From Podarcis gaigeae (Eukaryota), in assembly GCA_964106915.2 (NCBI GenBank), contig OZ066918.1: a stretch of 64,000 bases of DNA; one strand, given 5' to 3'. A model generated the notes under the pieces. The model saw only the letters and a list, made by a program, of their open reading frames with translations. It had not been told where the DNA came from and searched no databases. This document shows, piece after piece, positions 401 through 56,252 of the stretch (within the stretch, counting starts at the first letter, position 1; each line of letters opens with the position of its first letter). The translations under genes were made by a program, and so were the position numbers.

Positions 401-1719
401 GTAGCCGCAGCAGCAGCATCCAAGCCTAACAAAGCCTGCAGTTGCTTTTGTTCGCATGCACCCTTTGCAAACCCTCCTCTTTAGCCATTGCCACTCCCCT
501 CTCTGCTTTTGCCATCCCTTGTGTTTCCCTGCTTAACAACTTCAACAGCCTAAACCCAAATTCAGCCTCGTTGGTTAAGCTACTCCTATCAAAAGAAAAG
601 AAAAAAGCACAATGCTGCTTACTAAGGAAGTCCACTTTGTTCCCAGCTAATTAAAGAGGCGGCATCAATTCAGCTGAGAAGATTCCTCTAGCCAAAAAGC
701 TGCGCTCGTAACACAGCCTGGCAAAACCTGGCAAAACAACAGCCAAACTCAGCAGAACCCAGGGCTCTTGGCAGTTGCTGAGTGCAGCAATAAATTCACA
801 GGAAGCAGGATCCAGCATTATGGACTGTGCGTGCTCAGTTACAAGGCAAACTTTTACAACCCAAGAAGGACCTTCACATAAACAACACAACATTCACCTG
901 TTGTTCCATTCAGCTTTCAAATTAGACTGTTTCACACAAACCTTTACTCTACAAGCAAGAGGTCACATTTAAGGTAGACGACTGAAGTGTGAATGGCCTG
1001 CCTTGGGACTCTCTGGAAAGGAAAAATCAGGAAAGATCTTCTATAAAGACAAAGGGTTCGAAAGATACCAGGATGGTGATGGCACAGTAATTTTAAATGC
1101 ATGTGCATGGACACCACAGTAATACATGGGAGAACAGTTAGTACAAGAGTGGGAGGCCATAGACAGGGATCTCCTGGGAGATCTCTGACTAACGTACAGT
1201 AAATAGGCAAAGATTTCTGGCTCCCAATTGTTTGACAATGGCAACAAGAAAATGAATCCCAAGTGGAAATTAATCAGCTGAAACAAAGAAAAGTCAAGGA
1301 ACTGATTTGTGGGCAGAAGGACTGTGGACCCAGGGCCATCCTGGCACTCACACTCAAAGCCCTCTGCTCAGCAGCTGCTCAAACACACCCAGCTCTTTAA
1401 TCCGGAGTGTTTATCTTCCGCACCTGGCTCTTATTGCTGGATCATAAGGTTCTTTCAAATAAAACACAAAGTAGATCCCGCAAGCCTGAGTCAGTGGGTC
1501 ATGAGAAACAAACATTAAGGAATCTTGCGTGTATCCACACATAGTTGACTGCTCAGGTCAATTTGCTGCCTTCCCACTGAGGACCAATAATTCCTCTGCA
1601 ACTGTGTATGAGGCCCATTGCGTTCATACAATCACTCACCCTACCCTCAGCTGACACCTTTCTACGACCTAGGCGCATGGGTACGCAAATGAAGGCACGG
1701 GGGCCAGGGCCAACCCAGT

Positions 1720-1930
1720 CGCCTTCTCAATCCGGCCCGCGGACAGTCCAGGAATCAGCGTGTTTTCACATGAGTAGAATGTGTGTTTTTATTTAGAATG
1801 CATCTCTGGGTTATTTGTGGGGAATAGGAATTCGTTCTCCCCCCCCAAAAAAATATATATATATAGTCCGGTCCCCCCACAAGGTCTGAGGGACAGTGGA
1901 CCCTGAAAAAGTTTGCTGATGCCCGGGGCA
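1720..1930. mobile_element. hAT/Charlie-like non-autonomous DNA transposon fragment
   Basis: GTCCGGTCCCCCCACAAGGTCTGAGGGACAGTG...AAAAAGTTTGCTGA terminal-type sequence; boundaries approximate. Confidence 0.45.
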
Positions 1931-3297
1931 TCAGAAAGGGCACAAAGGCCAAAGTGACTCACCAGCATTGGTCTGTATGGGAAACTGAACAACAGATTAA
2001 TGGCCAATAACCTTGAGCGGATCTTTCCATCACTGCTGGCAAGCGCTGGATCAAATTAAGCCCCAGCTCTAAGCACATCATTTTACAGCTTGGGAACAGA
2101 TGATCTAGAGAAAACAGTTGCAAACCTTTGCATTTCAAAATGTTAATAATGAAAGGAAACGTGGCAAGCTAGGAAGTCCGGCAGGAAAGGGAGGGGGAAG
2201 GGAAGCAACTTCCTTTGATCCACATTGGGAAGCTATGCGCTTGTGTTTATCTTCTTGAAATTAAGAGGCAGTGAAAACTACAGTTCTCAGCATGCTTACA
2301 ATGGAGTAAGTCCTCCTGCACTCAGTGGGACTTAATTTCCAAGGGAACATGTTTAAGGTCAGGCTCCATCAGGGTGCCATCCTAAACAAGTCCCTGGAAA
2401 ATCTGCAGAATTTTTCCCAAATAAATATCCTAATTCAGATGCCATCTTAGTGCATGCCATGAAACTGGTTCCATGCTTAAAGTTCAACTGTTCTGCTTGC
2501 AAAGGTCACATGCTGGTGCCATGCTCCCCTGGCACACGCTCCCTGGCACGCCAACACGACACGTAGGCAAGGAAGTCCAGGAAACAGATGAGTTTTCTTA
2601 CAAGGAATTACATTTAAATAGGACCCAAGTGCTCCACTGTTAAGTTCATTTAAAATGAGTTGTTTTAATAGCCATTCAAAAGAATGCTGGTAACACTTCC
2701 CCAATCTTTTACATCAAAGCCAAGAACATTTTTGATCAGCTCAGAAATCAAAACAGACACAACTGAAGGAAGTGACTGCTGCATTTCCTGCCAGTTGACT
2801 GCAGCTTAGTCCTCTTGTGTTCATTGCAACATTTTTCTAAACCCTGTGCAACTTGCACAACAACAAACTCAACTTATGACTTGGAAATTTATTAATAATT
2901 TGTTCCCTACCCATTTGAATGGTTTGCGTCAGCCACTCCGGGCAGCTTCCCTCAAAGTAAGTTGCCCCTTCTAACTCAGGACGGTCTACTCTACCTGCTG
3001 ACCAACAGGGTTTCAGGCAGGAGTCTATCCCAATAGACCAAGGACTAAACCTGCGACCTTCTGTCTGCAAGACACTTATCAGATCTGCTGGCATCACAAT
3101 TGCCCCGTATGAATGGGGAATGTGCCCTAAAAGACACCCAATGCCCCCCTCTTTCTTCACATTGAACTTCCAAATAAACATGAATAGGACTGGGAGGTGT
3201 AAGCCACTTTTCCCCCTGTGGACTGCTTTGAGAAAAGATTTACTTGTGAAAAAAATTGCATATAAATAACTGGAGCTGGGGAGGTTGAGAGAAAATA

Positions 3298-3540
3298 AAA
3301 AGGTAAAGGGACTCCTAACCATTAGGTCAAGTCGGGACCGACTCTGGGGTTGCGGCGATCATCTCGATTTACTGGCCGAGGGAGCCAGCGTACAGCTTTC
3401 GGGTCATGTGGTCAGCATGACTAAGCTGCTTCTGGCAAACCAGAGCAGCGAACGGAAACGCCGTTTACCTTCCCGCCAGAGCTCACCCCGTCACGGGGAT
3501 TCAAACTGCCAACCTTCTGATCGGCAAGTCCTAGGCCCTG
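3298..3540 (+). mobile_element. Sauria SINE, internally deleted
   Basis: AAAGGTAAAGGG head shared with five other copies in the window; 11-bp TSD GAGAGAAAATA at 3287-3297 and 3541-3551. Confidence 0.85.
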
Positions 3541-4529
3541 GAGAGAAAATACCACTAGCCTATACAGTGGTGAATTAGCACTGGTGTGCAATGGTGTGCA
3601 TTTCAAGACAGAGTAGAGCAATTTTTGTGGAGTTGGGTTTAGCTCAAGGGTATCTTTTTGACAAGCAACCTTTCCACCCGTGCTTAAACCCCCATCAGGT
3701 GGTAGTAAGATGCAATGAAATTTAGCTCAGGGATAGGAAATCTCTGGCCCTCAGGTATGTCCAATGGTGAGGAGAGCTGTAGTTGTGAAACACCGCATCC
3801 TCCTCCAGCAAGGGCTCCTTCAGACAAGCAATTTGTTGAGCATCCATCCCCATTTGTTTGCACAAAGTCTGTGCAGAGGGTAAATCATATTTGCTGTTTA
3901 TTGAGCACTTGTTCCAATTTCTGGGGTGGTTAAGAAATACATCCATTTAAATATGTCTCGGCTACAATGTGAAATTAGTCAAAGGATTCTGATTTATTCA
4001 TCTAAAGATTTCAAAGAATGGCTTGTTCAATGCTTCCCTTCTCTCTAAAGAGAGGGTGGGAACCCTCAACCCCTCCCCCCTCCCCCACCCTTTTATTCTA
4101 GGCCCTCACACTATATGTGTGCGAGTCTGCTAACCTCTTGCATACTTTGATAAGTTGTCTCTCTGCACTAATCATGACCTATATTTGAAGCACCAAGTTG
4201 CCACATTCCTTTCCCCCAACGTGCTTCCATCTGTGCCTTTAACAGCAACAATAAAAAATAGTTTTTCATTGGATGGGTGACCATGTGTTGAGATTCTGGC
4301 ATTGCAAGGGGTTGGACTAGATGACCCTAGGGGTTCCTCCCAACTCTATGATTCTATGATACCATAGCAGGAAAAGCTTCCCCTGCCATTTCTGCCTGCA
4401 CTGCACCTATCAAAGATATGGAAGCCCTCCAGAGAAGGGTGGGGACCTGTTTCCCTCCTCGCAAATCACCAATGATATCATTTCTTGATCATCTTTACAA
4501 CAACCATGTGCGGGAGAAAGGCATCATTA

Positions 4530-4755
4530 CAGTGGTACCTTGGGTTAAGTACTTAATTTGTTCTGGAGGTCCGTTCTTAACCTGTAACTGTTCTTAACCT
4601 GAAGCACCGCTTTAGCTAATGGGGCCTCCTGCTGCCGCCGCGCCGCCGGAGCACGATTTCTGTTCTCATTCTGAAGCAAAGTTCTTAACCTGAAGCACTA
4701 TTTCTGGGTTAGCGGAGTCTGTAACCTGAAGCATATGTAACCCGAGGTACCACTG
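4530..4755. mobile_element. Tc1/mariner (Tigger/pogo-like) MITE
   Basis: TIRs CAGTGGTACCT...AGGTACCACTG with flanking TA; same family as 10858-11099 and 33198-33438. Confidence 0.85.
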
Positions 4756-4929
4756 TATTCCCAAATTGCAGAGAGGCAGGAAGATACAGGGCTTTACAAA
4801 GAGAGCTACCCGTTTGCAGCGCCAGTGAGATCTGAGCTGCTCCTCCAATGGGAGCCCGTTGCGCCAGCTGGCACAGACATTTGGCACACATCTACCCCGC
4901 GCATCACCCCACGGAAGCCTCACTCGAGA

Positions 4930-5720
4930 CAGAAGAGAACTCCTGGGGAACTTCATGGTCCCGGGCTTCCTCCACGAGAAACCAGCAGCGCCGCGAGGAA
5001 AGTTTCCAGACAACTGGAAAGAATCCGAGGGCGGCGGGCTGGGCTGGGAGCTCCGCATTCCGAGCGGAGAGGCAGCGCGAAGCTGCGCTCCTGTGCCCGC
5101 TTCCTCGAGGAGAGGCTTCCTTCTGGGGCGGCCACGAGTCCCCCCACCCCGCACGGAAGCCCGCCTGGTCTTCCTCCTTGTCCTCCGGGCGCCCCGGGCC
5201 CTCTCCGCCCTCCCGGCGCCCCGCTCACCCTCTCGGGCTTTCTTCTTCCTGGCCAGCGTGCCGCCGAGCTTGCCCAGGAAGGACTCGTCCTTCTTCATCC
5301 TGTGCGGCCGCAGGGTGGGCGAGCGCACCGGCGTGGAGGAGGACATGGGCGCGCCCGGGACGGAGGCGGCGGCGGCGGCGGCGGCGAGGCGCGGAGGGAG
5401 GGCGCCCGGAGGCCCGGGAGACACGCAGCCCGCCGCGGGGCGCACCGGCGCGGCCAAGCGCAACGTGACGGGAGGCGGGGCGCGCGCGCGCACGGGCGCA
5501 TCCCCGCCGGGGCCGGAGGGTCTGGCCAGGGAGCGCAGCGCCCGCCGATGGCGTGGGAGGCCGAGGGGCGGGTCCGGCGGCAGGAGGGGCTGGAAGGGCG
5601 AGGCGACGAGGCTTCTCCTTCGCCGGCACCTTCGGCTCCGTAGCCTGGAAGCAAAGGCTCTCCTTCGAGGGGGAACAAGCGCCTTAACAAAGAGTAACGG
5701 GGGGGGGGGGGAGTGGCTCT
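4930..5720. promoter_or_regulatory. CpG island / PARVB promoter and exon 1
   Basis: Very GC- and CpG-rich; GC boxes; (GGC)n at about 5365-5385 in the presumed 5' UTR. Confidence 0.85.
5229..5346 (-). CDS. PARVB: beta-parvin, coding exon 1 (rest of gene lies left of the window)
   Basis: MSSSTPVRSPTLRPHRMKKDESFLGKLGGTLARKKKARE(G/V) matches the parvin N-terminus; phase-1 GTGAG donor at 5228; sits downstream of SAMM50 as in human. Confidence 0.93.
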
Positions 5721-5867
5721 GAGCACGTGCCTGGCTCGAGAAGGGCCACCGCTCTCTTTAAAAAGAAAACTGAAGCCAGGTCGGTGGTTCTTCTGGGCAT
5801 GTGCCGAGTGCCCATCTGCCCTGAGAAAGGGGAAGGGGACGAAAAAAAATGGGCAAAAAAAAATGAG

Positions 5868-6583
5868 AGGCACAAATACAAGATGGGTGACACCTGGCTT
5901 GAGAGCAGTACATGTGAAAAGGATCTAGGAGTCTTGGTTGACCACAAACTTGACATGAGCCAACAGTGTGACGTGGCAGCTAAAAAAGCCAATGCAATTC
6001 TGGGCTGCATCAATAGGAGTATAGCATCTAGATCAGGGGAAGTAATAGTGCCACTGTATTCTGCTCTGGTCAGACCTCACCTGGAGTACTGTGTCCAGTT
6101 CTGGGCACCACAGTTCAAGAAGGACACTGACAAACTGGAACGTGTCCAGAGGAGGGCAACCAAAATGGTCAAAGGCCTGGAAACGATGCCTTATGAGGAA
6201 CGGCTAAGGGAGCTGGGCATGTTTAGCCTGGAGAAGAGGAGGTTAAGGGGCGATATGATAGCCATGTTCAAATATATAAAAGGATGTCACATAGAGGAGG
6301 GAGAAAGGTTGTTTTCTGCTGCTCCAGAGAAGCGGACACGGAGCAATGGATCCAAACGACAAGAAAGAAGATTCCACCTAAACATTAGGAAGAACTTCCT
6401 GACAGTAAGAGCTGTTTGACAGTGGAATTTGCTGCCAAGGAGTGTGGTGGAGTCTCCTTCTTTGGAGGTCTTTAAGCAGAGGCTTGACAACCATATGTCA
6501 GGAGTCCTCTGATGGCGTTTCCTGCTTGGCAGGGGGTTGGACTCGATGGCCCTTGGGGTCTCTTCCAACTCTATGATTCTATG
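5868..6583 (+). mobile_element. 5'-truncated CR1 LINE (ORF2 C-terminus plus 3' UTR)
   Basis: [53 protein letters not shown] is typical CR1 ORF2; ends in ATTCTATG repeat. Confidence 0.95.
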
Positions 6584-8899: not shown

Positions 8900-9316
8900 A
8901 GACTGGAAAGAGAAGTTGCTGAATTACAACTTATCACCAAACTTAAAACCATGGAGAAACCTGGCCTGAACAAAGACCTTGGATTCTTATCTCATTATAC
9001 ATGACAAAGCCATTTTTCACCTTTTCACCCCTTGCTTCTCCCTGTAAGACCTATTGCAGTAGTTAAGAGTCGTCAACAGGCTCATCACAGCTATCTGCCA
9101 ATCACCCATTCCCACCACCCTTCTGAGTAATACCCCTCCCCACCTTCTCACTATATAGAAGGGTCTGGAAACTTCTGTTTCAGTGTATCTGAAGAAGTGT
9201 GCATGCACACGAAAGCTCATACCAAGAACTGACTTAGTTGGTCTTTAAGGTGCTACTGGAAGGAATTTTTTTTGTTTTGACTATGGCAGACCAACACGGC
9301 TACCTATCTGTAACTG
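8900..9316 (+). mobile_element. 5'-truncated Penelope-like element (Neptune-type): GIY-YIG C-terminus plus pseudo-LTR
   Basis: 8900-9004 encodes RLEREVAELQLITKLKTMEKPGLNKDLGFLSHYT* (the E..I..L.T..PGLN end of PLE GIY-YIG domains); TATA-like TATATAG near 9152; hammerhead motif; 13-bp TSD AAACCCTAAACAT at 8887-8899 and 9317-9329. Confidence 0.88.
9185..9222 (+). ncRNA. minimal type-I hammerhead ribozyme motif (PLE-associated)
   Basis: GTAT-CTGAAGA-A-GTGTGC-AT-GCACAC-GAAA-GC-TC-ATAC: stem I GTAT/ATAC, core CUGANGA and GAAA, 6-bp stem II, palindromic AGCT stem III, UH cleavage after C9218. Confidence 0.8.
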
Positions 9317-11134: not shown

Positions 11135-11796
11135 ATGCTGTTGGAAGCCTGCAGCAAATAGAAGGAATGATGCGCTCACCACAATATGTTGAGCAGGCAT
11201 AGGCAAGCTCGGCCTTCCAGATGTTTTGGGACTACAACTCCCATGGTCCTTAGCTAACAGGACCAGTGGTCAGGGATTATGGGAATTGTAGTCCCAAAAC
11301 ATCTGGAGGGCCGAGGTTGCCTATGCCTGATATTGAGGTTCTACGAAAAAGTTATTCCAGAGCTGGAAAAGAGGTATCCTGACAGTACTGGGATATTGCA
11401 GCACAACCTAGCCCCCTATCACACATCGAAAGTGGTGAAGAAATTCATGACAAAGCAGGAAATACAGGTCGTTGATTAGTCAGGGAATTCCCCGGACGTA
11501 AATCCCATTGAGAATTTGTGGGCTATAGGCAAAAGTCGCCTCCGTGCTGTAGACTGTACGACTATGGAGAAGCTCATTCAGGCACTGATTCAAGTCTGGT
11601 ACAGGGATCCGAAAATCAACAGTGACTGTTCAAAACTAGTAGACTCCATGGCAAACCTTGTTCAAATGCTGCTTAAAAATAGTGGAGGTCATATCCATTA
11701 CTAATGTACGTATATGTGAGTTTTGTACATGTATATGTGAGTTTTGTACAATAAACTACATTGTTTGTTTCAATTACTGTAATTTGCACACGGGTG
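11135..11796 (+). pseudogene. Tc1-family (DD34E) transposase 3' relic with right terminus, interrupted by a MITE
   Basis: GSLQQIEGMMRSPQYVE | ..GILQHNLAPYHTSKVVKKF..VVD*SGNSPDVNPIENLWAI..KLVDSM..KNSGGHIHY*; in-frame stop where W is expected; ends TGCACACGGGTG+TA; left boundary approximate. Confidence 0.85.
11194..11329. mobile_element. palindromic hAT-type MITE inserted in the Tc1 relic
   Basis: CAGGCATAGGCAA...TTGCCTATGCCTG; 8-bp TSD ATGTTGAG / ATATTGAG. Confidence 0.85.
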
Positions 11797-12443
11797 TACA
11801 TCTCATATATTAACTGCACCCCTTCTCAGAGAACAAGGAACATGTCTTGGTTCTCTTGAAAATTAAATTACTCTAGTGTGTTCCATGAGACTGTCCCTAT
11901 CATCATTAGCATACAACTAGGTTGACAGATGATGCAGAAAGAAGACCAAACCAACAGTTGCTCAGCTGTGCTGGATGTTAGTATGAGTATGAGTGTGACT
12001 CAAAGTGCTGTTTCTAATGCACCTATAAAGCCTTGCATTACTGTTTTCCCTATATCAGCCAGTGTACCCTCTTTATGATAGGTAGAGGAAGTCATGCTCT
12101 GAATCCTGGTTCTGCAGAAAGTTTAAGGAGAAAGGCTTTCCCTGTGACATTTTCTCCAGGGAAGCAATTAAGCAACAAATCTGTCTAGTTTTAGATGACT
12201 TGGCAGGGAGGGGGAGAAAAGAGAATCACTGGGGGGGGGGGTTAGCTCTCTAGTATTTTTTTCATCTTATAGCTTTGCAAGTCACTGGGCCCTGAACAGA
12301 GGATATGCTATCAGCTCTTTTATGTTGGTATGCGATTAAAGAGGAGCATATAGTGGATTTTACAGTTTTGAAGCTGTAAAATACCTTATTTATATTTTTT
12401 TAACATATTAGGTGGAAAGGCAATTTAGAACAACCGAACATAC

Positions 12444-12585
12444 CTGTCCCCACTTTGTACTCCCATTGGGATACAATAATTGAGTTCTAATCGAGCAATG
12501 TTTCCAAGCCTGAGAACTATTCCAGCACCATAAGACCATCGGATGCACTCTGCTAGTTTACGAAGATGAGCCTTAGGACCTTCAC
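12444..12585 (-). CDS. SAMM50: SAMM50 exon 14
   Basis: [48 protein letters not shown]; 142 nt, AG/GT. Confidence 0.96.
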
Positions 12586-12667
12586 CTGGGAGTGGAAAGG
12601 AAGCCAATGAGAATGAGACAATAACCAAATGTTTTCATGGCCAGTAGCCCAAGTTCTGTTCCAGGTA

Positions 12668-13036
12668 AAAGGTAAAGGTAAAGGTACCCCTGCCCGTACA
12701 GGCCAGTCTTGACAGACTCTAGGGTTGTGCGCTCATCTCACTCTAGAGGCCGGGAGCCAGCGCTGTCCGCAGACACTTCCGGGTCACGTGGCCAGCGTGA
12801 CGAAGCTGCTCTGGCGAGCCGGCACCAGCGCAGCACACGGAAACGCCGTTTACCTTCCCGCTATAAAGCGGTACCTATTTATCTACTTGCACTTAAGGGT
12901 GCTTTTGAACTGCTAGGTGGGCAGGAGCTGGGACCGAACGATGGGAGCTCACCCCGCCGCGGGGATTCGAACCGCCGACCATGCGATCGGCAAGTCCTAG
13001 GCACTGAGGTTTTACCCACAGCGCCACCCGCGTCCC
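12668..13036 (+). mobile_element. Sauria SINE, full length, CpG-rich (young)
   Basis: (AAAGGT)n head; 14-bp TSD TTCTGTTCCAGGTA at 12654-12667 and 13037-13050. Confidence 0.9.
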
Positions 13037-13157
13037 TTCTGTTCCAGGTACAAGGCAGTAAACTATTTTAAAACACTCAATTTAAAAAATGTAATTTTTG
13101 CAGAAACAGTTAAAATGCCTTAAAAGGGGGGGGGGCTCCAATGTATTTGCTTCTTAC

Positions 13158-13304
13158 CATAATTAAGATTGCAGAGGTTGCCAGCATTGAGAAAGAAGTG
13201 TGTTCTGAATAGATCTCCAAATCCTCCCCGGCCAGGCCGAAAAGGAAGAGGAGTGTACAAATGCAGACCTCCAGCCCAGTAAGCTTCACCTCCCAGGTAA
13301 TCCC
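13158..13304 (-). CDS. SAMM50: SAMM50 exon 13
   Basis: [50 protein letters not shown]; 147 nt. Confidence 0.96.
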
Positions 13305-13817
13305 CTAGAAGAGTAACACAGCACAAAATATTTGCTCCATCAGCAATCCCAAGAACACTATTCAGTATAAGAAAGAGGTATCCTCCGTCACTTCAGGCTA
13401 AATCTACTTTTTTGCCATAATTGTCCATAGAAGCACTACACACTGTAAAACTTTATTGATGGTCCCACCTGCTGGCAATGGATCACAGAACAACTTTCAG
13501 AACAATATTGTGGGACGGCTACAACACCTTCCCTGTATCTGGGGTTCAAGCTGGAGGCGTAGGGGTTTCCAGGGCTTGGGTGACCCCTTTTTGGCTTCAC
13601 CCAGGCCTGGGAAGCTTGCCTGCCTAATTACAACAACACCTTTCTTTACTACGTTGTAGGACGTAGGCAGAAATACAGATACATAAAGAACGCAATTTTG
13701 TCAATGCATCTTTCTGTTTGTTCACTTAAAGAAGGTAGATTTCCAGGGGAGACTGAGTAACTTTTTTCTGAAAAGGGGGTGGTAGGTCTGATAAGTTTGG
13801 GAACCTCTGCCATAGAA

Positions 13818-17368: not shown

Positions 17369-17712
17369 AAATAAAAAAAAATTATAATTTTTTTTTTATT
17401 AGCAATGGCATATTTTTAGCCAAGTAAACATTCTGATAGATCAATTGAACCTTACAGCTCTTATTGTGAATAAATATACAATTGCCACTTCAGCTATTAA
17501 CTATGCAAGACATACAGCAAAGCCAGGTTCCCTTTGCATGTGAAAAACCAACTGCTATTAAGAAAGTTGTGTCTCTCTTCATGTTAGGAAATGTACCCTT
17601 ACAATGAACTGAAAATATTAGGTATGTTGTGAAACCTTATAACAATAATATAAGTAGATAAATATGAATATAAAAGTATATATAAATGAATAAAAGGATA
17701 AAGATGCTGTAA

Positions 17713-17756
<44 letters not shown>

Positions 17757-17836
17757 TTTCGTAGATTTTCACGGGTACAGGAATGCAGGTTTTGGTGTCC
17801 TCGGGTGTCTTCCCGTGTAAAAGTTGGGGTGTCTAG

Positions 17837-17874
17837 GCGACGTTTCGACGAGGTCTCACTCGTCATCTTCAGGC
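17837..17874 (-). ncRNA. hammerhead ribozyme-like motif, sense to SAMM50 pre-mRNA
   Basis: Mirror copy of 18266-18303. Confidence 0.6.
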
Positions 17875-18265
17875 TGGTGCTTTCGGCTTCTTGTTACTGG
17901 AACAGAGCGGGATCTCAATGTTTGAGTTCCTATAAATACTGTAGAGGGGGTGTGGTGTCTAGCCTCCAATGTTCTGGGCAGAGAGGAAGTTCCCAGGCTA
18001 GTGTGCCTTTTCTTCTTTTGTTCCTTAATTACTTGAGAGATACCTTGAGTGATTTCTTGAGTGGTACTCAGGATATCACTCAAGAAATCACTCAAGGTAT
18101 CTCTCAAGTAATTAAGGAACAAAAGAAGAAAAGGCACACTAGCCTGGGAACTTCCTCTCTGCCCAGAACATTGGAGGCTAGACACCACACCCCCTCTACA
18201 GTATTTATAGGAACTCAAACATTGAGATCCCGCTCTGTTCCAGTAACAAGAAGCCGAAAGCACCA

Positions 18266-18303
18266 GCCTGAAGATGACGAGTGAGACCTCGTCGAAACGT
18301 CGC
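18266..18303 (+). ncRNA. hammerhead ribozyme-like motif
   Basis: GC-CTGAAGA-T-GACGAG-TGAGAC-CTCGTC-GAAAC-GTC-GC: intact core, 6-bp stem II, palindromic ACGT stem III, GUC site; stem I only about 2 bp. Confidence 0.6.
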
Positions 18304-18352
18304 CTAGACACCCCAACTTTTACACGGGAAGACACCCGAGGACACCAAAACC

Positions 18353-18399
<47 letters not shown>

Positions 18400-18589
18400 C
18401 AGCACAAAAATCAGCTTTCCTCATATCCGTATAGACTCGAATCTCTATTGCTCTTGGGCAAGAATGGACAACAGGTGTCATAAGGAACCATTATTTCAGC
18501 ACTATTGCATTTGGCTTAATTAATGTGGTACTATTCATCAGCATTTGGTCGTACTTAAAAAATTCATATTCCAAATAGCAAAAACCTAC

Positions 18590-18718
18590 AGACACAGATG
18601 ACTTGAGTGAATGTCCACTTTCTTCTCGGACAGAAAATGATGCTGTTCTTGCAAGACAGCCAAGCTCCCTCCAGACACCCTCCCATTTTAGTGTGTGGTT
18701 GGTCTTCCATATGGGAAA
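18590..18718 (-). CDS. SAMM50: SAMM50 exon 8
   Basis: [43 protein letters not shown]; 129 nt. Confidence 0.96.
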
Positions 18719-19455
18719 CTGTAAAAGAAACAATTTCTTTAATTATGAATGAGAAAACATTTACAGATTTCCAGCATCTTTCACATATTTCTTTATGAGC
18801 AGGAGCACTGGGTTTACTGGTAATGCAGCCAGTCTTAGAAGAGCCAACTCAGACTATAGGAGCTGCTGCTAAGGTACTTTGCTTTGACAGTCTCCTCCCA
18901 GGTTCACCTGGCTTCTCTCTTGAGGACAGGTGCTAGCCAGGTGAGCTGGCTTTTTGTGAGGAAGGTGCTGGGCTGCTAGCTCCTTTGAAGAGAGTTGCTA
19001 GGCTCTCAGCTGGACCGGAGCCGAGGCAAGCAGCAGACATGAGGTAACTCAGTGAATTCTCACAGAAAGGAGATGCTGGGGTGTTGAAATCCATGCAAGA
19101 ATTTGCCAGTTCCAGGAGGCAGCACTGGAGCAACAACAGAGCAGGAAAATTTTCAGTTGCTGCATCTGCTTCATTTTTAAAATGCTGCCTCCATTGCCTT
19201 CTGCTCCCCCACCTCAATTTTAGCAATGCAGAAGATGAAGCAAGAAGATGAGAGGAAAAGGAAAGGTTAAGTCTATCATGCCCAGCACAAATATTTCCTC
19301 CTCCTGAGTTCTCTGCAATCTTCAAAAAACTTGAGAAAACTTGGTTTGAGTGAGGGGCAGCTGCCAGACAGAGAGGCACTGTCACTGCAGGTAACCAAAT
19401 TTGTGGATTTCTCGTTCCCCAGCCAACCATAAACAAGTAGTGCTATTTTACCTAC

Positions 19456-28400: not shown

Positions 28401-28979
28401 AAGTGTAAGTGCCACCTCCAAGTCAGTGAGATGTACGTGGGTGTGTCATGAAGACTTTACATTCACAATAGGTGTGTAAATACTATGCTGCCAAGGAAAG
28501 CACTGCAGTCCCACCAGAGACGCCATCACAGGCAGCACCACTTTGGAGAATTATCGATTAAGGCTCCTTAGGGGAAGCAGGAGCCTCCCAGGCTCCACGC
28601 AAGCCAGTCCAAGTCTGCTGGCCGCAAGCCCTCCGCTCCCCCCTCCTTCCTTGTTCCAAAGGCTTGAGGCACCAGAGCATGTGCAAAGTCCACCACTACC
28701 CAAGGAAGGCAGGCTGGAGTGGAGGCACCGGATTCCACAGCGCACCCAAAGCAGCCTTCATGCCTTTGCACATTCTCAAGGTCACACTCTGCACATGCTC
28801 AGAAAAACGCTGCTCGGAATGTTCGGTATTGTTTTTAAGGAGAGCCCTAAAAAAGGGGGGCGGGCATTCTGCACATGCTCAGAAGAACGCAGCTCAGAAG
28901 AGACAGTATCCTTTTCAGGTGACGCCCATAAAAAACCCAATGACAATAATCCTAGGAGGAGGAATTCTTCACATGCTCA

Positions 28980-29830
28980 GAGGAACGCTGTCCCGAGCCG
29001 CCGGGCGTTGTTTTAGCGGTGCGCGCGTGCATGTGAGGGCGCGCGGGGCGGCGGGCGTCTCCGCTACCTTGGCGGCCCCGATCCCTCCCCCGCCCAAGGT
29101 CGCCGCCCTCGCCCGCCAAGCCCGCGAGCCGGGCGCTCCTTACCCGCGCGTGGACGGTGCCCATGGCCGCCTCTCAGCGACGCCGAGCGGCAGAGCGAGC
29201 GGGAGAGCCAGCGAGGGAGCGGCAGGCGAGGGAAGAAGCGCCGCGACGGTCCCTCAGGAGGAGAAGCTGCAGCGCGGGGCGGCGGCCATGACAGGAAAGC
29301 GCGTCGGCGGCAGAAGGGCCCGCCCCGCCCTTCCCGAGCGAGTCTGATTGGCCAGGCCGGGGCGGAAGGGGGCGGGGACTGGAGGAGGCGCGCACGGAAA
29401 GGAAGGGCGCCGAAACCGTAGATAAAAGTGAAGAGAGATGAATAGGTGCCAGCTTCCGGGATATATGAGGGAACTAGCTAGCGGCAAGAGGAGGCAGCAG
29501 GGTCCGTAGGCGCACAGGAGTTGTAAGAGTGGGCAGGGACCCCCGAGGGTCATCTAGACCAACCCCGCTGCCATGCAGGAATCCCAACACGCGTCAGATA
29601 TGGGACCCGAGCGGACCCTGTTTCGCTTCTGCAGATGAGCTTCGCCTCCGATATGCGCTTCGCCTCCGGTGCCCCCATCTCTCGGGTTCACGTCTGAACC
29701 CTACGTCTGTCCCCCCCCCCCGGGTTAGTTGGGCAGCTGACCGTGGAAATTGGGCGGATTGGTGTCGCCGGAAGAAGCGGCTCCAGCAAAAAGGTGGGAG
29801 CCGGCGCGAAAGCGCCTGCTGTGCTGTCTA
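28980..29830. promoter_or_regulatory. CpG island / SAMM50 promoter
   Basis: CpG-rich; NF-Y consensus GGCCAATCAG (minus strand, 29344-29353); GC boxes at about 29359-29378; ETS-type CGGAAG. Confidence 0.85.
29144..29164 (-). CDS. SAMM50: SAMM50 exon 1 (coding part)
   Basis: GCC ATG G Kozak context, MGTVHAR then GTAAG donor; the 15 exons sum to 1410 nt = 469 aa, same length as human Sam50. Confidence 0.95.
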
Positions 29831-44070: not shown

Positions 44071-44647
44071 AATATTGAAAATTCCCAAAGAGCAACATAC
44101 AGAAAGGCATCTCATACCAGTTAATACTCTGTTGACACATTACCAAAAGGCTCAGTAAGCACTTTATCATAATGAAAGAAAACAATTCTACACTACCGTA
44201 GAGCATTGCACACCTCCTTCCTCAAACCTTAACTGCACCAAATCTGCCCCAATCATTGCTCAACTCCCACCCCAATATTGCAAACTGAGGAGGGTTACCA
44301 CCACTTACATTGTTCCTTGCTAGTAGGAACTGCTCTCAATGAATTTACTAAAAGTGCCCCTAAGATGCACTCAAGTAGCGCGTGGTCATCCTCTAATATC
44401 TAGATTAAATGTGGAGTGGGAAAACCATGTATGCCACCATGAGCTTCTAGAAGGAAAGGTGGGCTATAAATTTATATATATACAAAAAATTAGAAATTTA
44501 AACACAACTATACCTTTGGAGGGGTGCATCTGTCTAGCATTCCATGGTAGGAACATATCTGTCTAGCATTTGTCTAGCATTCCATGGTAGGAACATACAT
44601 GCCAACAAACTAGCAATTGGGTAAGAGAAAATAGTGAATATACATAC

Positions 44648-44857
44648 CTTGGGTTCTGGAGGAAAAAGTGCTTGAGTTAAACGGTAGATGTTCCCTAGGC
44701 TAAACTGAATGCTGGTGTTGGTGAAGTTCATTTCATGGAAGTTTGCAGAGTTGCCCTTGGGACAAATGTCACACTCCCCAGCAAAAGGTGAAATTGTGAT
44801 GGTGTTTTTTGAGTCATACTGAGGTAAGTTGTCACTTATTCCACCATCGACGTAGCG
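44648..44857 (-). CDS. PNPLA3: PNPLA3-like exon 4 (catalytic Asp, DGG)
   Basis: [34 protein letters not shown]...ALFPPEPK; 210 nt. Confidence 0.96.
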
Positions 44858-44867
44858 CTTTGGGAAG

Positions 44868-44869
<2 letters not shown>

Positions 44870-44908
<39 letters not shown>
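44870..44908. repeat. (AAAG)n microsatellite
   Basis: Seen directly, 12 nt from the exon 4 boundary. Confidence 0.95.
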
Positions 44909-44911
<3 letters not shown>

Positions 44912-47619
44912 AGGAATCTATTTGCTTAAAGCAAAATTTAGCTGACTTGCTCTGCAACTTCAGAAAGGAAGCCTAGTATTTCCACTTGCCACACCTTTCA
45001 GTGGTAGTATTATATGTGAGCAGGTACTGACCCAGCACAGGCCATTGCTCAGAACAGCAGCAGAGCTTTGTGCACCTCGGGATCGCAAGTAATGTCTGAA
45101 AATGTGCAGGTGCACATCCCAGATTATATGCTGCCCAGCAGCTTCTGCAACATTGGAAGCAATGTTATGGGCTCTCTTTTGGCATGCACCATACTTAGAG
45201 GCTAAATTCAGCCCTGGTGAAAACATTAGCTAAGGAAACATACAACTCTCTTTTGTGTTTCATAGGGCTCACATCCTTCTCACCCTGCCCCTTCCCCAAC
45301 CAAGGTTCCAATGTTCACCCTAGTTTGAGCAAAGGGCATACTCTTGATTCAAATCAGCCTTAAAAACCCAGCTTTTGCTAAGGTTGCCTATACCCAAGGA
45401 AGCTGTTAGGTTTTGGCTAGGAGCGGCCTGGAGAGAGCCTCCATTACAGTCATTACAGCAACTCAGGCAGACCACATTTCAAGCAAGCTGAGAGGAAACA
45501 CCTCTGCTGTCTCCTTTCCTGTAAATTATCTGCCACCCTCCTTTATCATTTGTAATTTTAAAGTTAAATAAAACAACATCAAACTCCTAGAATTGTTAAA
45601 TGACTGTATGATAACCCCAAATGTCACATCCTCCCCCTCCCCACAATTACTAATCAAGTCATTTCAATAAGCCAAAGATCTCAAAAGATGTGCTAAACTC
45701 CTTTCCCTATCTCACTTGGAAAGCACAATGAAAATGCATTTTAGAAGCCATCTCTCAGACAATTAGGACAATTTCTTCCTGACTGGTGCCACTTAAAAAC
45801 TTTAACCTCTGGTCATAGCCAGGAAGACAGGATTTGCAGTCCTTGTTTTTATTTTTAAGTCCAACTTGAGCATAAAGGGTGATGCTTTTCACCTTAAGAG
45901 GTACAAATCTTTCAGGTTTCAAAGATACCTTATGTCACTGCACAGGAAGATTCCCGTGGACTCTACCTGTCCCTTCTCCTTTCCTGTCTCTAGTCCCTTT
46001 CTGTTGCTGAAGAGGCCTCTTCACCTTCACTATAGCAAACCCCAGCCTCTCAGAACCTCCCCCCTTCTCTCTTCCCTAACAAGTTAGCCAGCTGGCCAAA
46101 TTCTTACTTTCCCCCCCTTTCCAGCCCAATCGGTCCCTGTTTCCCAGCCAGACCTGCTCTTTCTTCCTCTTGCAATGCCCTTTTCTTCTTCATTGGCCGT
46201 CTCATACCAACAACCTCATATTCTCCTTCCCTCGTGACCCATTGCCACCCAAAAGTATCCCACCTGATTCTTCAGATTCTTACCTAAAGAACTTTCCTGA
46301 AGCTCCGCAAACCCCTCCAAGCTACCTCTTCTTCTCTTACCACCTCCCCTTCTCTCTCTAGAGCAAAGAAGCACCAATTTCCATCTGGTACCACCTTCAC
46401 CCTTTCAGCCAACCTCTTCCCTCATCCAGGCAACAGTCTCCTCTCACACTCTTTTCCTGCTCAATCTCTTTTATTCATGTCAAACGCTTGCAAACCTAGC
46501 CTACTGTTAGTGTGTTGTTTACTGATTATCATATTTACTAATTCTCCTTTTGATACAATAAAATTTACTTTAGATCTATCTTTGTTGTCCTTGTTAACTC
46601 TCAGGGCGCCAAATTCTAGAGTGTCCAGGCCTCTACGTCAAAAGATCCCAAAAAGGAGATGTCAGGATTGCGCGTGAGAACTTCAGGCTTCTGCACGATC
46701 TGCACACTTCCTCCTATAGTTTTGTTTCTATGCCAATACTGAGTGGCAAAGCCAATTCATAAAATTAAGTAGGCCTTCAGGCATGTCTCATGTTTGTCAC
46801 CCAACTAAATCCTTTTAGGTAACATAATTGTCCAGCCACGAGGGCAAAGCAACCAGATTAACCTGAACCATGGATTTAGTCTAATATGCTACTCTGCACC
46901 TCGTATAGGATTTCAGCTTTTAAAGAGTAAAAATGGATGAATATAAGACTTGTAAAAAAATGTAGATCAGCAGGCTTTTCAAAAAAATTATCACTAAATC
47001 ACAGACTGTTAATCTTCACAGTTTTGATTTTGAAGTAAAAAAAAAGTCACATGAAGCTTTCACACGAATATCAGCACTATTTTTTAAACATCTGGAATGT
47101 GCACATACTTGACCTGAATCATTTTTTCTTTTCTTATTACTAAAGTAGGAGGGCAAAACCACACTAGCAAAGATCAACATCTCCATGTTTCCTTTCAACT
47201 AAGATGCAGGCAGCCTTTAATAGGATTCCTCAAGTTCTACGTAAGGCCTTGAAATACACTGCTTAAGAAAGGACCTTAAAACAATTAAGAGGATAACAAT
47301 TAGCTTCTCATCTTTAAGATCGCTTCTTCGGGCACTCTGCAAGACAGTTCTCAACCAACACATACAAGCCCAAGCCCAGATACAAACTACTGTGTGTCAG
47401 TATTGCTAAATCTATGTGCATATGTACCATGTAACATATTCATGTACAGATATGTGTGCTCCATGGAGTGCACAAATAAAGAGATTTGCATACAATGAAC
47501 TTCCAAGGATTGTTCACAGATTCCTAATAATAGGACAACATGGCCAGGCAGGAGGCACACCCTTCTGCTTCATTCAATATCATGCAATGTGGCACCCTAC
47601 ATACTTTGTGTGCCAATAG

Positions 47620-47965
47620 GTAAAGGTAAAGGGACCCCTGACCATTAGGTCCAGATGTGGCCGACTCGGGTTGCGGTGCTCATCTCGCTTTACTGGCCGA
47701 GGGAGCCGGTGTACAGCTTCTGGGTCATGTGGCCAGCATGACTAAGCTGCTTCTGGCGAACCAGAGCAGAGCACGGAAATGCCGTTTACCTTCCCGCTGG
47801 AGTGGTACCTATTTATCTACTTGCACTTTGACGTGCTTTCAAACTGCTAGGTTGACAGGAGCAGGGACTGAGCAACGGGAGCTCACCCTGTCATGGGGAT
47901 TCAAACCACCGACCTTCTGATCGGCAAGCCCTAGGCTCTGTGGTTTAACCCACAGCGCTACCCTA
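47620..47965 (+). mobile_element. Sauria SINE
   Basis: 14-bp TSD TTGTGTGCCAATAG at 47606-47619 and 47966-47979. Confidence 0.9.
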
Positions 47966-48384: not shown

Positions 48385-48570
48385 CTGTCAAAAAGAAAAG
48401 AAAGGTTAGTTGCATACTGCATTTCTAATAGGAACATTTCCCCAAAGTAAAGCTCTAACACAGCCATTTTCAAATTCTAAAAAGGAATATGAGGAAACAA
48501 ATTAAAAATAAGGTTGAGACAAATGTGAAATATTCTGAACATTATTAACATGGTTAAAATGAGAATATAC

Positions 48571-48803
48571 CTGTATGACTTCTTCTTTGGAATTAAAGTT
48601 GGATACCATCACATTTTTGCCATCAGACACTCTGGTAAGTGAAATGGAAAGTTTCCCTGATATCAACTGATGAGTGTTTTCAGGAAGATTTTTGCAAAGT
48701 CCATCCCTTATAATCTTCATCACGTTAAAGGAAGGATGAAGAGGGCCAAGATTTCGCTTTCTTGCTTCTCTGGCTAGACCCAGAACATCTGCACAAGCTT
48801 CAG
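48571..48803 (-). CDS. PNPLA3: PNPLA3-like exon 2
   Basis: [27 protein letters not shown]...[30 protein letters not shown]; 233 nt. Confidence 0.96.
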
Positions 48804-51149
48804 CTGAAAGATACATTACTGCATGTAATTGTGGAAACCAAACTGGTTAAAACAGATGTCAGGGGTCACAAAAGAAAAAAATTGTGATCAGAATGTGCCA
48901 TGGGGTCTTGACCATGGTGTGCCTTTGAAACTCAGCATGAGTTCAGAGCACAAGCTATAACCTTTCAAAAAACAAATTATTACAACTTTTATCTGTATTA
49001 GGTGAGTGAACAATTTCCCAGATAGTTTCTATATTTGACAGGGTCAGCCTGAAGTTACAAGATTAAAACAAACAAAAAAATCAAAGTCATTTCAACTATT
49101 AAAAAATAGATTCTGAAATGTAGTTATGCTAAGTTGTGACAGCAAGCCAGTTCTTCAAATGTCAACAGCATCATCGCTGTCAGGGAATATCTGACCTCAA
49201 TGAATTGACCAGTCAATTGACATTATTTGACCAGTCAACTGGCAAGCATCCAAACTCTAATAATAAGTAAATAAGGAAAAAAAGAATATGGGGCCATGAC
49301 ACACTAAAGGTATGTTAGGTATCTTTACCATTCACTGATTTATTTATTTGCAATTGGTGGCCTGAAAATACATTTTAATAACAGCATTTCATTAGAAGAG
49401 ATAATACTTTTCCAAATTAAACAAACTCTGCTATCTGCCCAAGGACTTGTGTAACTATTCTGAAAAGAGTACACTCCCAAACTATTTTCTAAATATTGTA
49501 TTTTAGATCAGTCATTGCTGGTACTTTGATAATCTAAAGGCATTAGCAGAGGTTTCCTTCTCTCTCTCTCTCTCCCCAAGAGCTGCCCAATAAATGGAAT
49601 AGGTTAATGTCCTGCAGTAACCTTCTCTACAGGGGAGAGGACTAATCGTCCCACATGTCAGCTGAGTCTCAGCTTATTTTCCTCACCCAATCAAAAGACA
49701 GCAAATGAACTACTACTACTACCAGTTTATGAGGGCTGCTTTTTATCTTTTGCTCATCAATTTCATGTCCAGAAAGGAAGTTAAATTCAGCTTTCCAAGA
49801 GGAATTTGACCTACTAATGCAGGGCACAGAAAGAGCTGAAACATCTTGAAGGGGTCAATACAGACAGAATATGATTAATTAAATAATAAGTTATTACATT
49901 TTTTACCAATCAGTGAAAGTTGGATTATAATGTAGATTTGCATAGAATTTATATTTCATTTCATAATGCAAAAAAATACTAATTTTGATATTGGTGGTGA
50001 AATCTAATTGACATGTACATTTTACCAAGCTATGCAATCCTACTCAGAAGTCAGCCTCACTGAGCTCAAAAGGACTAACTTCCTGGCATGGGGAACTCCT
50101 GGTGTTGTTGGAGATCCTACAATGCCCCACCTACATTGGCCAATGGTCAGAGATGATGGGAGCTGTAGCCCAAAGGTATATAAAGAACCACTTTCCAAAT
50201 CCCTGGTGTATAGCACTGCAGCCATTAAGCACCAAACTATCTGTCTGTCTGTCTATATCTATCATCAAAATGCCATAAAAGGTGCACAATTTATCAGAAC
50301 AGTGACAGAAGGTGTACTTGATCCTTTCCCAGTAAGCCATAAAAAACCAATCACTTCTACCAGCTGCTTTCCTACTTGGGGGTAAGGAAAGTGGGTGGCA
50401 TTAGGAAGCAGTGCTGGGGGTGCGGTTTTTACCAGTAATTAAATGTACACCTTCTCATGGTTGTATTTCCCTGTGTTCTGAACACAGTGCTTGAAAACTG
50501 TTTACTTGTCACCTGTGCATCTAAATGGTTGGGCCATACAAGTTATTTTAACAGTTTAATAGTTTGCTCTCAACTAAAGGCCATGGACTTTCACCCTTAA
50601 AAGGTGGAGGTACTTATCAAATTCTGTGCACTATGCAATAAGCAACCAAGTCTTTCTTCCTGGTGTTGCTCAGTTTTTCTCATGCCATCTGACGCAAAGA
50701 AAAATCTAGCTAAATGTGGGAGACCATTATAACTGTTACTTAGCAATGGAAAATACAGTGAAAGAGAATCTGCCCACACAACTTCTTAACTAATGCAGGA
50801 AAACTCAAATAAAAAATAAAATGTGGAGAACAGGTCCTTCGGAATGCTTAGCTCTAAATTTGAACACTCTTCCCCAAACTATAAAACCTAATTTAGCTCA
50901 AAGCAGGTTTTCTAATATGCATATGTTTATATTTAGTCGCTGAGAAAGGATGTTCTTTCAGTTAAATGGAACACTAATTAAAAAGTGAAGGCAACATTTC
51001 AACGGATAAGAGTTTAATCCTCTAAGGTACTTAACTAAGATTTTCACACACAATTCAGCATGCTACAACTCACAAAAATGCTATTATGCCATTTCATGTC
51101 AGAAGACAGCACAAGAGGGAAGGGATTGACTTTTATTATTTTAATAAAT

Positions 51150-54500: not shown

Positions 54501-55189
54501 CAATCCTGTATTAAAGGAAGACATGGCTGAGTCACAAGTTCCCACCTGTCTAAGACTGTGCTGCACAAGTACCTCACCATATATTCAGAGTTACTCTCTC
54601 CATCATTATTCAGACCTGAGTTGAGCTTCGGATCCTAGATCAAGATTCTGGGCACTTTCATTCCGACATTTGCAGCCTTGCTCCCCTTTCAACAGCCTCA
54701 ACCACAAACACAAACAAACAAACAAACACACCCCTTCTCCATATTTAGGGTGAACACCCTCCGGGGTCCGTTTCTTTGAGCTGTAAGCCACTTTGGGTCG
54801 CCCCTGGGCAAGATAAAAGCGCCTAATAAACTGAATAAAGTGTATCCCTCGCCCACGCCCTCCAGGGGCTGGTTGAGTTGGAAGCCACTCTGGGTCGCCA
54901 CCGGCAACATAAAAGAGCCCAATGAATCGGATACATAAATCGTAATTAAAATAACCACTCCGTACGTCCGGTGCAAAAAAAAGCAAACATTGCATTAAGC
55001 TACGGGATGCAGCTCACGGCCGCTCCTTCGTTCTTTAATTTAAAAAAAGCTTTTGTTGCGATTATTGCAATTACCAGGTTGTTCTCCCTGCTCTTACGAC
55101 TGGCTATTACTGCCTCCAAAGCTCAATGTTTCGTTTATAATAATAATATTATTATAAAATATGAATTACAAAATAATAATTGCAAAAGA

Positions 55190-55780
55190 AAAGCCCCGCA
55201 ATGAGGGGAATGAGGCCGTGAGACTAGCGGTGAGCAGGCGCGCCTCCTTCGCTCGTACCCAGCGACCCGCCTCCGACGAGGACGGCTCCGGTCAGGGCTC
55301 CGGCCGAGGCCCCGCACACCTGGCGGGCGTCGCGGATGAGGTGCGGGGCTCTCTCCTGCAGGCAGCTGGCCGCGCCGACGTGGTAGACGCCCAGGAACCC
55401 GCAGCCGGCGAACGACACGCTCCAGCCGCCGCCGCCGCCCTCGCCCGGCATCCCGGCGGCCGCCTTCCCGTCCCGACCCGGCGCGGCTGAGGAGGCGGCC
55501 AGGAGCCGCGCACGCGCACGGGCGCAAGGGAAGCGGCGGCGAGATCTCCGGGTCGGGCGCTTGGCTGATAAAGAAGGCCGGCGGCAGAGGGAGCGCCGCC
55601 ACGAACGTGGCCCGAGGGGCGCCGGCCAATGGGAGGCCATATGCAAAAGAGAGAGGGGCGGAGGGAGGCCGGGGGCGGGGCCTCCTGTCCTGCTTGGCTC
55701 GCTCGCTCGCTCGCTCGCTCTCTAAGTTGGTGGGTCTTGGAGAGCTTCCAGCGGGGCGCCGGGTCGGCTGAGGTCTCCAT
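55190..55780. promoter_or_regulatory. CpG island / PNPLA3 promoter
   Basis: CpG-rich; CCAAT at 55626-55630; GC box GGGGGCGGGGCC at 55671-55682. Confidence 0.85.
55259..55451 (-). CDS. PNPLA3: patatin-like phospholipase (PNPLA3 by synteny) exon 1
   Basis: [26 protein letters not shown]...GASAG (oxyanion GCGFLG and nucleophile Ser); 193 nt; nine exons total 1518 nt = 505 aa; upstream of SAMM50 as human PNPLA3. Confidence 0.92.
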
Positions 55781-55891
55781 CTCTGGATCTATTGAGGATG
55801 GAGGGGTTGGAAAGGGACCTTCCGCGTTGGGCACAGGCTGGAAAGTGCATGCTGCGGGGGAATTTACACAGGTAAAGGGAATTTATATAGG

Positions 55892-56252
55892 AAAAGGTAA
55901 AGGGACCCCTGACCATTAGGTCCAGTCGTGACCGACTCTGGGGTTGTGCGCTTATCTCGCGTTATAGACCAAGGGAGCCGCCATTTGTCCGCAGACAGCT
56001 TCTGGGTCATGTGGCCAGCAGGACTAAGCCGCTTCTGGCGAACCAGAGCAGCGCACGGAAACGCCCTTTACCTTCCCGCCAGAGTGGTACCTATTTATCT
56101 ACATGCACTTTGACGTGCCTTTGAACTGCTAGGTTGGCAGGAGCTGGGACCGAACAACAGGAGCTCACCCCGTCGCGGGGATTCAAACTGCTGACCTTCT
56201 GATTGGCAAGCCCTAGTCTCTGTGGTTTAACCCACAATGCCACCCGCATCCC
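55892..56252 (+). mobile_element. Sauria SINE
   Basis: AAAGGTAAAGGGACCCCTGACCATTAGGTCCAGTC head. Confidence 0.9.

Follow-up and report, generated by a model that had tools for sequence, protein, structure and literature searches.

The window analysed here, which is the whole stretch of 64,000 nucleotides, carries on its minus strand a gene that encodes an Omp85 domain (Pfam) in two exons (13123-13392 and 12428-12634) and that is read as SAMM50, an essential mitochondrial gene. Upstream of these exons lies a further exon, bounded by AG and GT splice signals (Table 1), and a spliced contig in an RNA run (X17) contains matches that end exactly at its two borders, 18590 and 18718. At 232 nt downstream of the donor of this exon, and thus within an intron, begins a palindromic insert.

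The whole insert is one palindrome of 575 bp, comprising two arms of 281 nt each and a central spacer of 13 nt. A script check confirmed that each arm is the exact reverse complement of the other; the looser figure of 284 nt around a spacer of 7 nt that is returned by a repeat finder represents a loose extension, the 3 extra positions on each side being unpaired. The unit is flanked by AT tracts of 19 repeats on the left and 20 on the right, beyond which the 64-kb window contains a single AT run, of 12 bp. The terminal AT of each arm can be assigned equally to the element or to the microsatellite. An additional 28 letters are attached to the left copy only. As RNA, the locus is predicted to fold into one hairpin with a value of -636.7 kcal/mol (z = -67.6). 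No further copies of the arm were found in the 64-kb window, and the only long inverted repeat elsewhere in it is an unrelated 56-nt pair at 11194-11329.

These results confirm the observations of an original prediction that had been made from the letters of the window, in which two exact inverted arms of 281 nt, bracketing (AT)n tracts, a 28-nt tail on the left arm only, a hammerhead motif in each arm, and a position in an intron of SAMM50 about 230 nt downstream of a donor had all been described. The minus-strand exon with its splice signals, the spliced RNA contig that confirms its ends, the Omp85 domains in the two further exons, and the descriptor search reported below each support one or more of these claims.

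Table 1. Coordinates of the insert, its parts, and the neighbouring exon, in positions of the window. PLE, Penelope-like element; ORF, open reading frame; RT, reverse transcriptase.
Feature	Position	Strand	Remark
Left (AT)19 tract	17717-17754		One half of the microsatellite target; may be a target-site duplication, which is not readable in a microsatellite
28-nt PLE tail, ORF nt 85-112, left copy only	17755-17782	-	Matches the optional 30-40-bp tail between two RT start sites
Left arm: PLE end, truncated at 5', with pseudo-LTR, hammerhead, and start of the ORF	17783-18063	-	Sense on the minus strand
Left-copy minimal hammerhead	17839-17872	-	Sense copy in SAMM50 pre-mRNA
AGTG microhomology: end of left arm and family sequence of the right copy	18060-18063		Complementary to CACT (18077-18080)
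13-nt spacer: element sequence of the right copy, unit 1 of a 12-nt repeat	18064-18076	+	Family contigs
Right arm: same PLE end, tail-less, ending at ORF nt 82-84	18077-18357	+	Sense on the plus strand
Right-copy minimal hammerhead	18268-18301	+	Predicted cleavage after 18301; start codon 18274-18276
Right (AT)20 tract	18356-18395		From the sequence
Upstream exon of the host Omp85-domain gene	18590-18718	-	AG/GT signals; donor 18589/18588

A Minimal Hammerhead Motif on Each Strand

Hammerhead-type motifs, one per strand, were located with a structural descriptor that specified the core boxes, an optional unpaired base, a G-C-closed stem II of 5-8 bp, and pairing of 15.2 with 16.2. The descriptor matched both motifs of the palindrome and one unrelated position, 9189, in the window, compared to 0 matches in 200 shuffles of the window. 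In the palindrome motif, the core boxes CUGANGA, GAAA, and UH are present around a stem II of 6 bp, an unpaired base is found between positions 9 and 10.1, G10.1 pairs with C11.1, and the 15.2/16.2 pairing is palindromic. Helix III is absent, with positions 15.2 and 16.2 being adjacent. This architecture corresponds to the minimal hammerhead class defined by Cervera & de la Pena for metazoan PLEs (PMC4209133). All four of the emergent traits of those ribozymes are also present in the palindrome motif and, further, the same study reports pairs of minimal hammerheads on opposite strands separated by 100-700 bp, like those of the palindrome (PMC4209133). The motif departs from those described in that study in that helix I consists of only 2 contiguous pairs and in that it is scored by none of the Rfam hammerhead models: searches with Hammerhead_1, _3, _II, HH9, and HH10 yielded no hammerhead match at the gathering score, none at E ≤ 1 on 2.2 kb, and none at E ≤ 10 on 96 nt. 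PLE minimal hammerheads are reported to require a dimer or the element's protein (PMC4209133; PMC11167929).

The Arms as Ends of a Penelope-Like Element

In sense orientation, stem II has a start codon (18274) at its base, and cleavage is predicted to follow ORF nt 28. The cut site is followed by a predicted stem-loop with an AC-rich apex that adjoins the inner end, paralleling what has been reported for Poseidon_Ac. The right arm stops at ORF nt 84, the left copy together with its tail extends to ORF nt 112 with the frame open, and the 5' truncation of the arm lies ~214 nt upstream of the start codon. Of the ORF, each copy includes only the initial 28 or 37 codons, and the insert is without coding capacity. 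Sequence in which an RT or GIY-YIG domain could be sought amounts to these 28 or 37 codons and ~30 letters of upstream family sequence, the window containing no second copy of the family.

Poseidon_Ac (PAc) of Anolis carolinensis is a PLE of the Penelope/Poseidon clade (Frangieh et al. 2024, PMC11167929). Its ORF starts at stem II, it is cut at ~nt 30, and it has two internal RT start sites, the stretch between which (~nt 85-119) forms an optional tail (PMC11167929). The arm shares with Poseidon_Ac a minimal hammerhead that lacks helix III, a start codon where stem II begins, a cut ~28-30 nt into the ORF, and two element ends ~30 nt apart, near ORF nt 85 and 112-119, that delimit the tail. Additionally, both have an AT-rich target and belong to abundant, young families that are transcribed in lizards. 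Stem II and most of the sequence are unlike those of Poseidon_Ac, however. The likeness is one of layout with a by-eye resemblance in the tail region, and the difference in stem II indicates that the arm belongs to another family. The locus also differs from Poseidon_Ac in holding only the terminal ~300 nt, twice and in inverted orientation, without an RT/EN ORF. Taken together, the hammerhead, the layout of the ORF start, and the Poseidon_Ac-like ends identify the arm as the 3' end of a PLE insertion unit. A reading of the arm itself as a tandem duplication of two ~125-nt units, one of them with a decayed ribozyme, was rejected on the basis of an alignment score of 19 against a mean of 16 and a maximum of 24 among shuffles.

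The Family in Public Contigs

Four public runs, all taken as contigs, were compared: X1, from organism A and with 0 differences in the flanks; X3, also from organism A but from another sample and study; X4, from organism B; and X17, an RNA run from organism G. A total of 3365 contigs in X1 fall on the arms, 2084 of them at an identity of at least 99%, and the summed word depth on the arms (1e5-8e5) compares to 120-142 on the unique flanks. Runs X3 and X4 repeat this pattern of high arm abundance. The arm family is thus both very abundant and young. The original prediction had staked its reading on the arm having similar copies elsewhere, and thousands of near-identical contigs from three species bear it out. 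AT runs adjoin the tail-less end of the element in 25 contigs of X1, 6 of X3, and 10 of X4, and they also precede several of the 5'-truncated family copies.

Family contigs also clarify the centre of the palindrome. In all four runs (14, 2, 6, and 3 contigs), contigs follow 18060-18128 in sense and then continue upstream into letters that are unlike the left arm. Since such contigs pass through the spacer, the spacer is element sequence and not filler. It forms the first of four 12-nt repeat units (~18065-18112), and the AGTG and CACT that border it constitute an inverted repeat, intrinsic to the element, of 4 bp and with a loop of 13 nt. The spacer of the original prediction keeps its length of 13 nt and belongs to the right copy.

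At position 18097 (mirror position 18043), organism A reads G and nearly all of the family depth in organisms B (X4) and G (X17, RNA) reads A, which suggests separate amplification bursts after the species split. In the RNA run, family contigs reach depths of 600-4300 across 18060-18345, as compared to 330-470 for the SAMM50 exon in the same run, and an RNA contig crosses the predicted cut site of the family uncut, an observation that is not decisive for self-cleavage. Transcription of the family thus extends over the pseudo-LTR region, at least part of which is uncleaved. Moreover, X1 contains 42 short contigs, of single-copy-like depth, in which an antisense part of the family is joined to a sense part at truncation points other than those seen here. 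These are probably other head-to-head pairs in the genome, although the short sides of the joints measure only 21-28 letters, which weakens this evidence.

The Empty Site and the Age of the Insertion

A single contig of 2176 nt from organism B (X4) covers 17402-17709 and 18405-18800 with 38 letters in between, where the window has 695. The site in organism B is thus empty, with ~22 AT letters and without the insert. On either side, the flank contigs of organism A extend over ~30 letters of the AT run before they end, and none of them bridges the site. Between organisms A and B, 16 substitutions and 1 indel were counted over 704 nt of flank (2.3%), and between the two arms 0 differences in 281. 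An insert as old as the split between A and B would be expected to have accumulated ~6 differences between its arms where 0 are seen (Poisson P ~0.002, a value that ignores gene conversion between the arms). The empty site in organism B and the identity of the arms together indicate that the insertion is younger than the A-B split, and the earlier claim that it is very recent is upheld by both observations.

Origin of the Inverted Pair

On both sides of the palindrome, the strand that is attached to the flank by its 5' end is antisense cDNA, and the 5'-truncated ends of the two copies meet in the centre. Such a geometry is what would be expected if both nicked strands of the target had primed reverse transcription. 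On balance, the locus is probably a recent and lineage-specific insertion of two inverted, 5'-truncated 3' ends of a Poseidon-type PLE into a (TA)n tract in the SAMM50 intron, made by two-sided priming. In such a reaction, the RT-endonuclease would nick the AT tract on both strands, with cDNA synthesis primed from the 3'-OH at each nick. The right copy, as bottom-strand cDNA, would start at the inner RT site (ORF nt ~84) and run 5' through the spacer to AGTG, while the left copy, as top-strand cDNA, would start at the outer site (ORF nt 112), hence its tail, and would halt 17 nt earlier. The 3' ends of the two antisense cDNAs would then anneal through the 4-nt AGTG/CACT microhomology and each would be extended on the other, the outcome being a perfect palindrome of two head-to-head copies, only one of which is tailed. 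In vitro, the PLE protein of Anolis cleaves AT-rich DNA and extends the two strands, unlike R2 or L1 (PMC11167929). Two-sided priming, as judged from the anatomy of the locus and this one in vitro study of another PLE, is likely. More tentatively, the palindrome may be the in vivo footprint of a symmetric integration in which a dimer of the RT-endonuclease primes both strands, with its protomers using either start site. If that reaction is real, the one-sided tail and the head-to-head pseudo-LTRs would be two faces of one event.

Several other origins of the palindrome can be weighed against two-sided priming. The original prediction had invoked a fold-back, and a single round of target-primed reverse transcription followed by snap-back, in which the cDNA from the right flank folds on AGTG/CACT and copies itself, would indeed result in perfectly identical arms. 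It would also account for the junction, which coincides exactly with the 4-bp inverted repeat of the element and its 13-nt loop, and palindromes at the inverted junctions of PLEs have been interpreted as products of self-priming (Arkhipova et al. 2013, PMC3846280). What a simple fold-back leaves unexplained is the one-sided tail. The strand that is continuous across the junction begins at the tail-less end, and a copy of itself would stop at its own 5' end or enter the AT target; it cannot generate on the far side 28 nt of genuine element sequence that corresponds to ORF nt 85-112 with the frame open. A loss of exactly the tail, flush with the usual alternative end of the family (the 25 contigs in X1), would have to be a coincidence. 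The junction thus fits the fold-back that had been predicted but the ends do not, and snap-back is considered unlikely.

Considerably less probable is an assembly artefact, in which the genome contains one arm or a long AT tract and the assembler built the inverted duplicate. Perfect palindromes and AT tracts assemble poorly, and tandem and inverted PLE structures are known to trouble assemblies (PMC8557442). Among the public pieces listed, no contig or read lies over the central junction (18063|18064), such that the palindrome rests on the assembly and on indirect support. The two ends are asymmetric in the way expected biologically of two PLE ends, the unique flanks differ on the two sides, and the junction falls on a microhomology inside element sequence and not on adapter-like filler. 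The 42 contigs in X1 that join antisense to sense parts suggest that many other head-to-head pairs exist, and the same architecture has been published in many animals (PMC4209133; PMC8557442; PMC3846280). An artefact is accordingly quite unlikely. The least probable origin, which we regard as scarcely credible, is a gene of the host for a hairpin RNA or microRNA, or a fold-back DNA transposon, with no relation to PLEs. Rfam returns matches to several long-hairpin miRNA families on both strands (MIR7996, MIR7993, mir-1890, and others), but all are below the gathering score, the best reaching 109 of the 119 bits needed, and their symmetry on the two strands is of a kind that any perfect hairpin would produce, which marks them as generic. 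Further, the layout of the arm is that of a PLE end and the site is empty in a related species, while neither a transposase nor terminal-repeat logic is found at the locus that would point to a fold-back transposon.

Relation to Known Systems

Published traits of PLEs include an inverted and 5'-truncated copy of the pseudo-LTR, a tail at one end, a bias towards (TA)n, palindromes at junctions, and the presence of the first ORF codons in the pseudo-LTR (PMC3846280; PMC8557442), and tails of 30-40 bp and of 31 bp have been reported (PMC8557442; PMC3846280). The literature thereby confirms the background on which the original prediction had drawn, namely that PLEs carry minimal hammerheads in their pseudo-LTRs, may form inverted 5' copies, and are in some cases biased towards microsatellites. 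The inverted pseudo-LTR architecture known from Penelope of Drosophila virilis, Pen2a_Av of Adineta vaga (PMC3846280), and the Naiads (PMC8557442) shares with the locus a head-to-head inverted, 5'-truncated copy, a tail of 30-40 bp that is confined to one end, a short junction palindrome, ORF codons in the pseudo-LTR, and a (TA)n or AT-rich target. The inverted pseudo-LTRs that have been described usually flank a full or partial ORF, whereas here the two ends meet directly.

At the SAMM50 locus, the terminal repeat contains a minimal hammerhead whose stem II has the start codon at its base; two 3' ends lie 28 nt apart in the start of the ORF, with the tail at one end only; the copy is inverted head-to-head and 5'-truncated; and the family has an AT-rich or (TA)n target. 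The locus is a real structure and a recent, ordinary specimen of the known PLE class.

Two other systems invite comparison. Non-LTR retrozymes (Cervera & de la Pena 2020, PMC7229834; Li et al. 2026, preprint) are also short, non-coding, and hammerhead-bearing, and they too derive from the pseudo-LTR of PLEs and are mobilised in trans. Retrozymes are head-to-tail tandem elements with a circular RNA, whereas at the locus the pair is inverted, each strand has a single hammerhead, and there is no ribozyme-bounded unit. An assignment to the non-LTR retrozymes was rejected given that the copies are inverted, each strand has one motif, and no tandem copy is present in the window. Twin-priming inversions of LINE-1, which Ostertag and Kazazian are said to have described in 2001, reportedly arise when both strands of the target prime and the resulting cDNAs join by microhomology. 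Twin priming would thus share with the locus the synthesis of cDNA from both strands, the join by microhomology, and an inverted 5' part. It differs in that the two parts of a LINE-1 inversion are different, adjacent segments of one RNA, while at this locus the same segment is present twice, yielding a true palindrome.

Potential Consequences for the Host Gene and for PLE Biology

As a result of the insertion, an essential mitochondrial gene carries a perfect 281-bp inverted repeat at a distance of 232 nt downstream from a splice donor. It is plausible that the palindrome serves as a putative substrate of ADAR or Dicer in the pre-mRNA, that it affects splicing, or that it extrudes as a cruciform in DNA. 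In the SAMM50 pre-mRNA, the antisense arm is transcribed before the sense arm; this order, together with a motif that lacks helix III and has a helix I of 2 bp, would favour sequestration of the sense hammerhead, which in this model should be locked in the 281-bp duplex and inert as a ribozyme.

For the biology of the elements, the locus shows that an active PLE family of lizards continues to enter genes, and it represents an unusually clean natural product of PLE integration, in which both ends, the microhomology at the junction, and the empty site are readable. The one-sided tail speaks against a plain fold-back and for the priming of both strands, which has so far been observed only in vitro. 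Neither the implications for the element nor those for the host alter what is known of the PLE class.

Other Features in the Window

The descriptor match outside the palindrome (9189-9218, plus strand) is a second motif of the minimal hammerhead type, with a different stem II (5 bp and a 4-nt loop), one unpaired base, and a palindromic 15.2/16.2 pairing. It is probably an older PLE-derived fragment that belongs to another family. The unrelated inverted repeat mentioned above consists of two 56-nt copies (11194-11249 and 11274-11329) that are 91% complementary and separated by a 24-nt spacer, and it overlaps the start of two open frames on the plus strand (11258-11701). These frames, which to our reading resemble the remnant of a Tc1/mariner transposase, returned no domain in Pfam.

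Three stretches (4751-6000, 28751-29750, and 55001-56000) resemble CpG islands, with a GC content of 0.59-0.76 and a ratio of observed to expected CpG of 0.7-1.2. They are probably the promoters of the downstream neighbour, of SAMM50, and of an upstream patatin-like neighbour, respectively. Open frames at 44537-44917 and 48505-48846 on the minus strand gave no Pfam match at E ≤ 0.01; they resemble exons of a patatin-like phospholipase (PNPLA3-type), a gene that we would expect beside SAMM50. Finally, the near-identical translations of 3270-3575, 12682-13068, 47642-47917, and 55891-56121 indicate that a single SINE-like interspersed repeat occurs at these four places, on both strands of the window.
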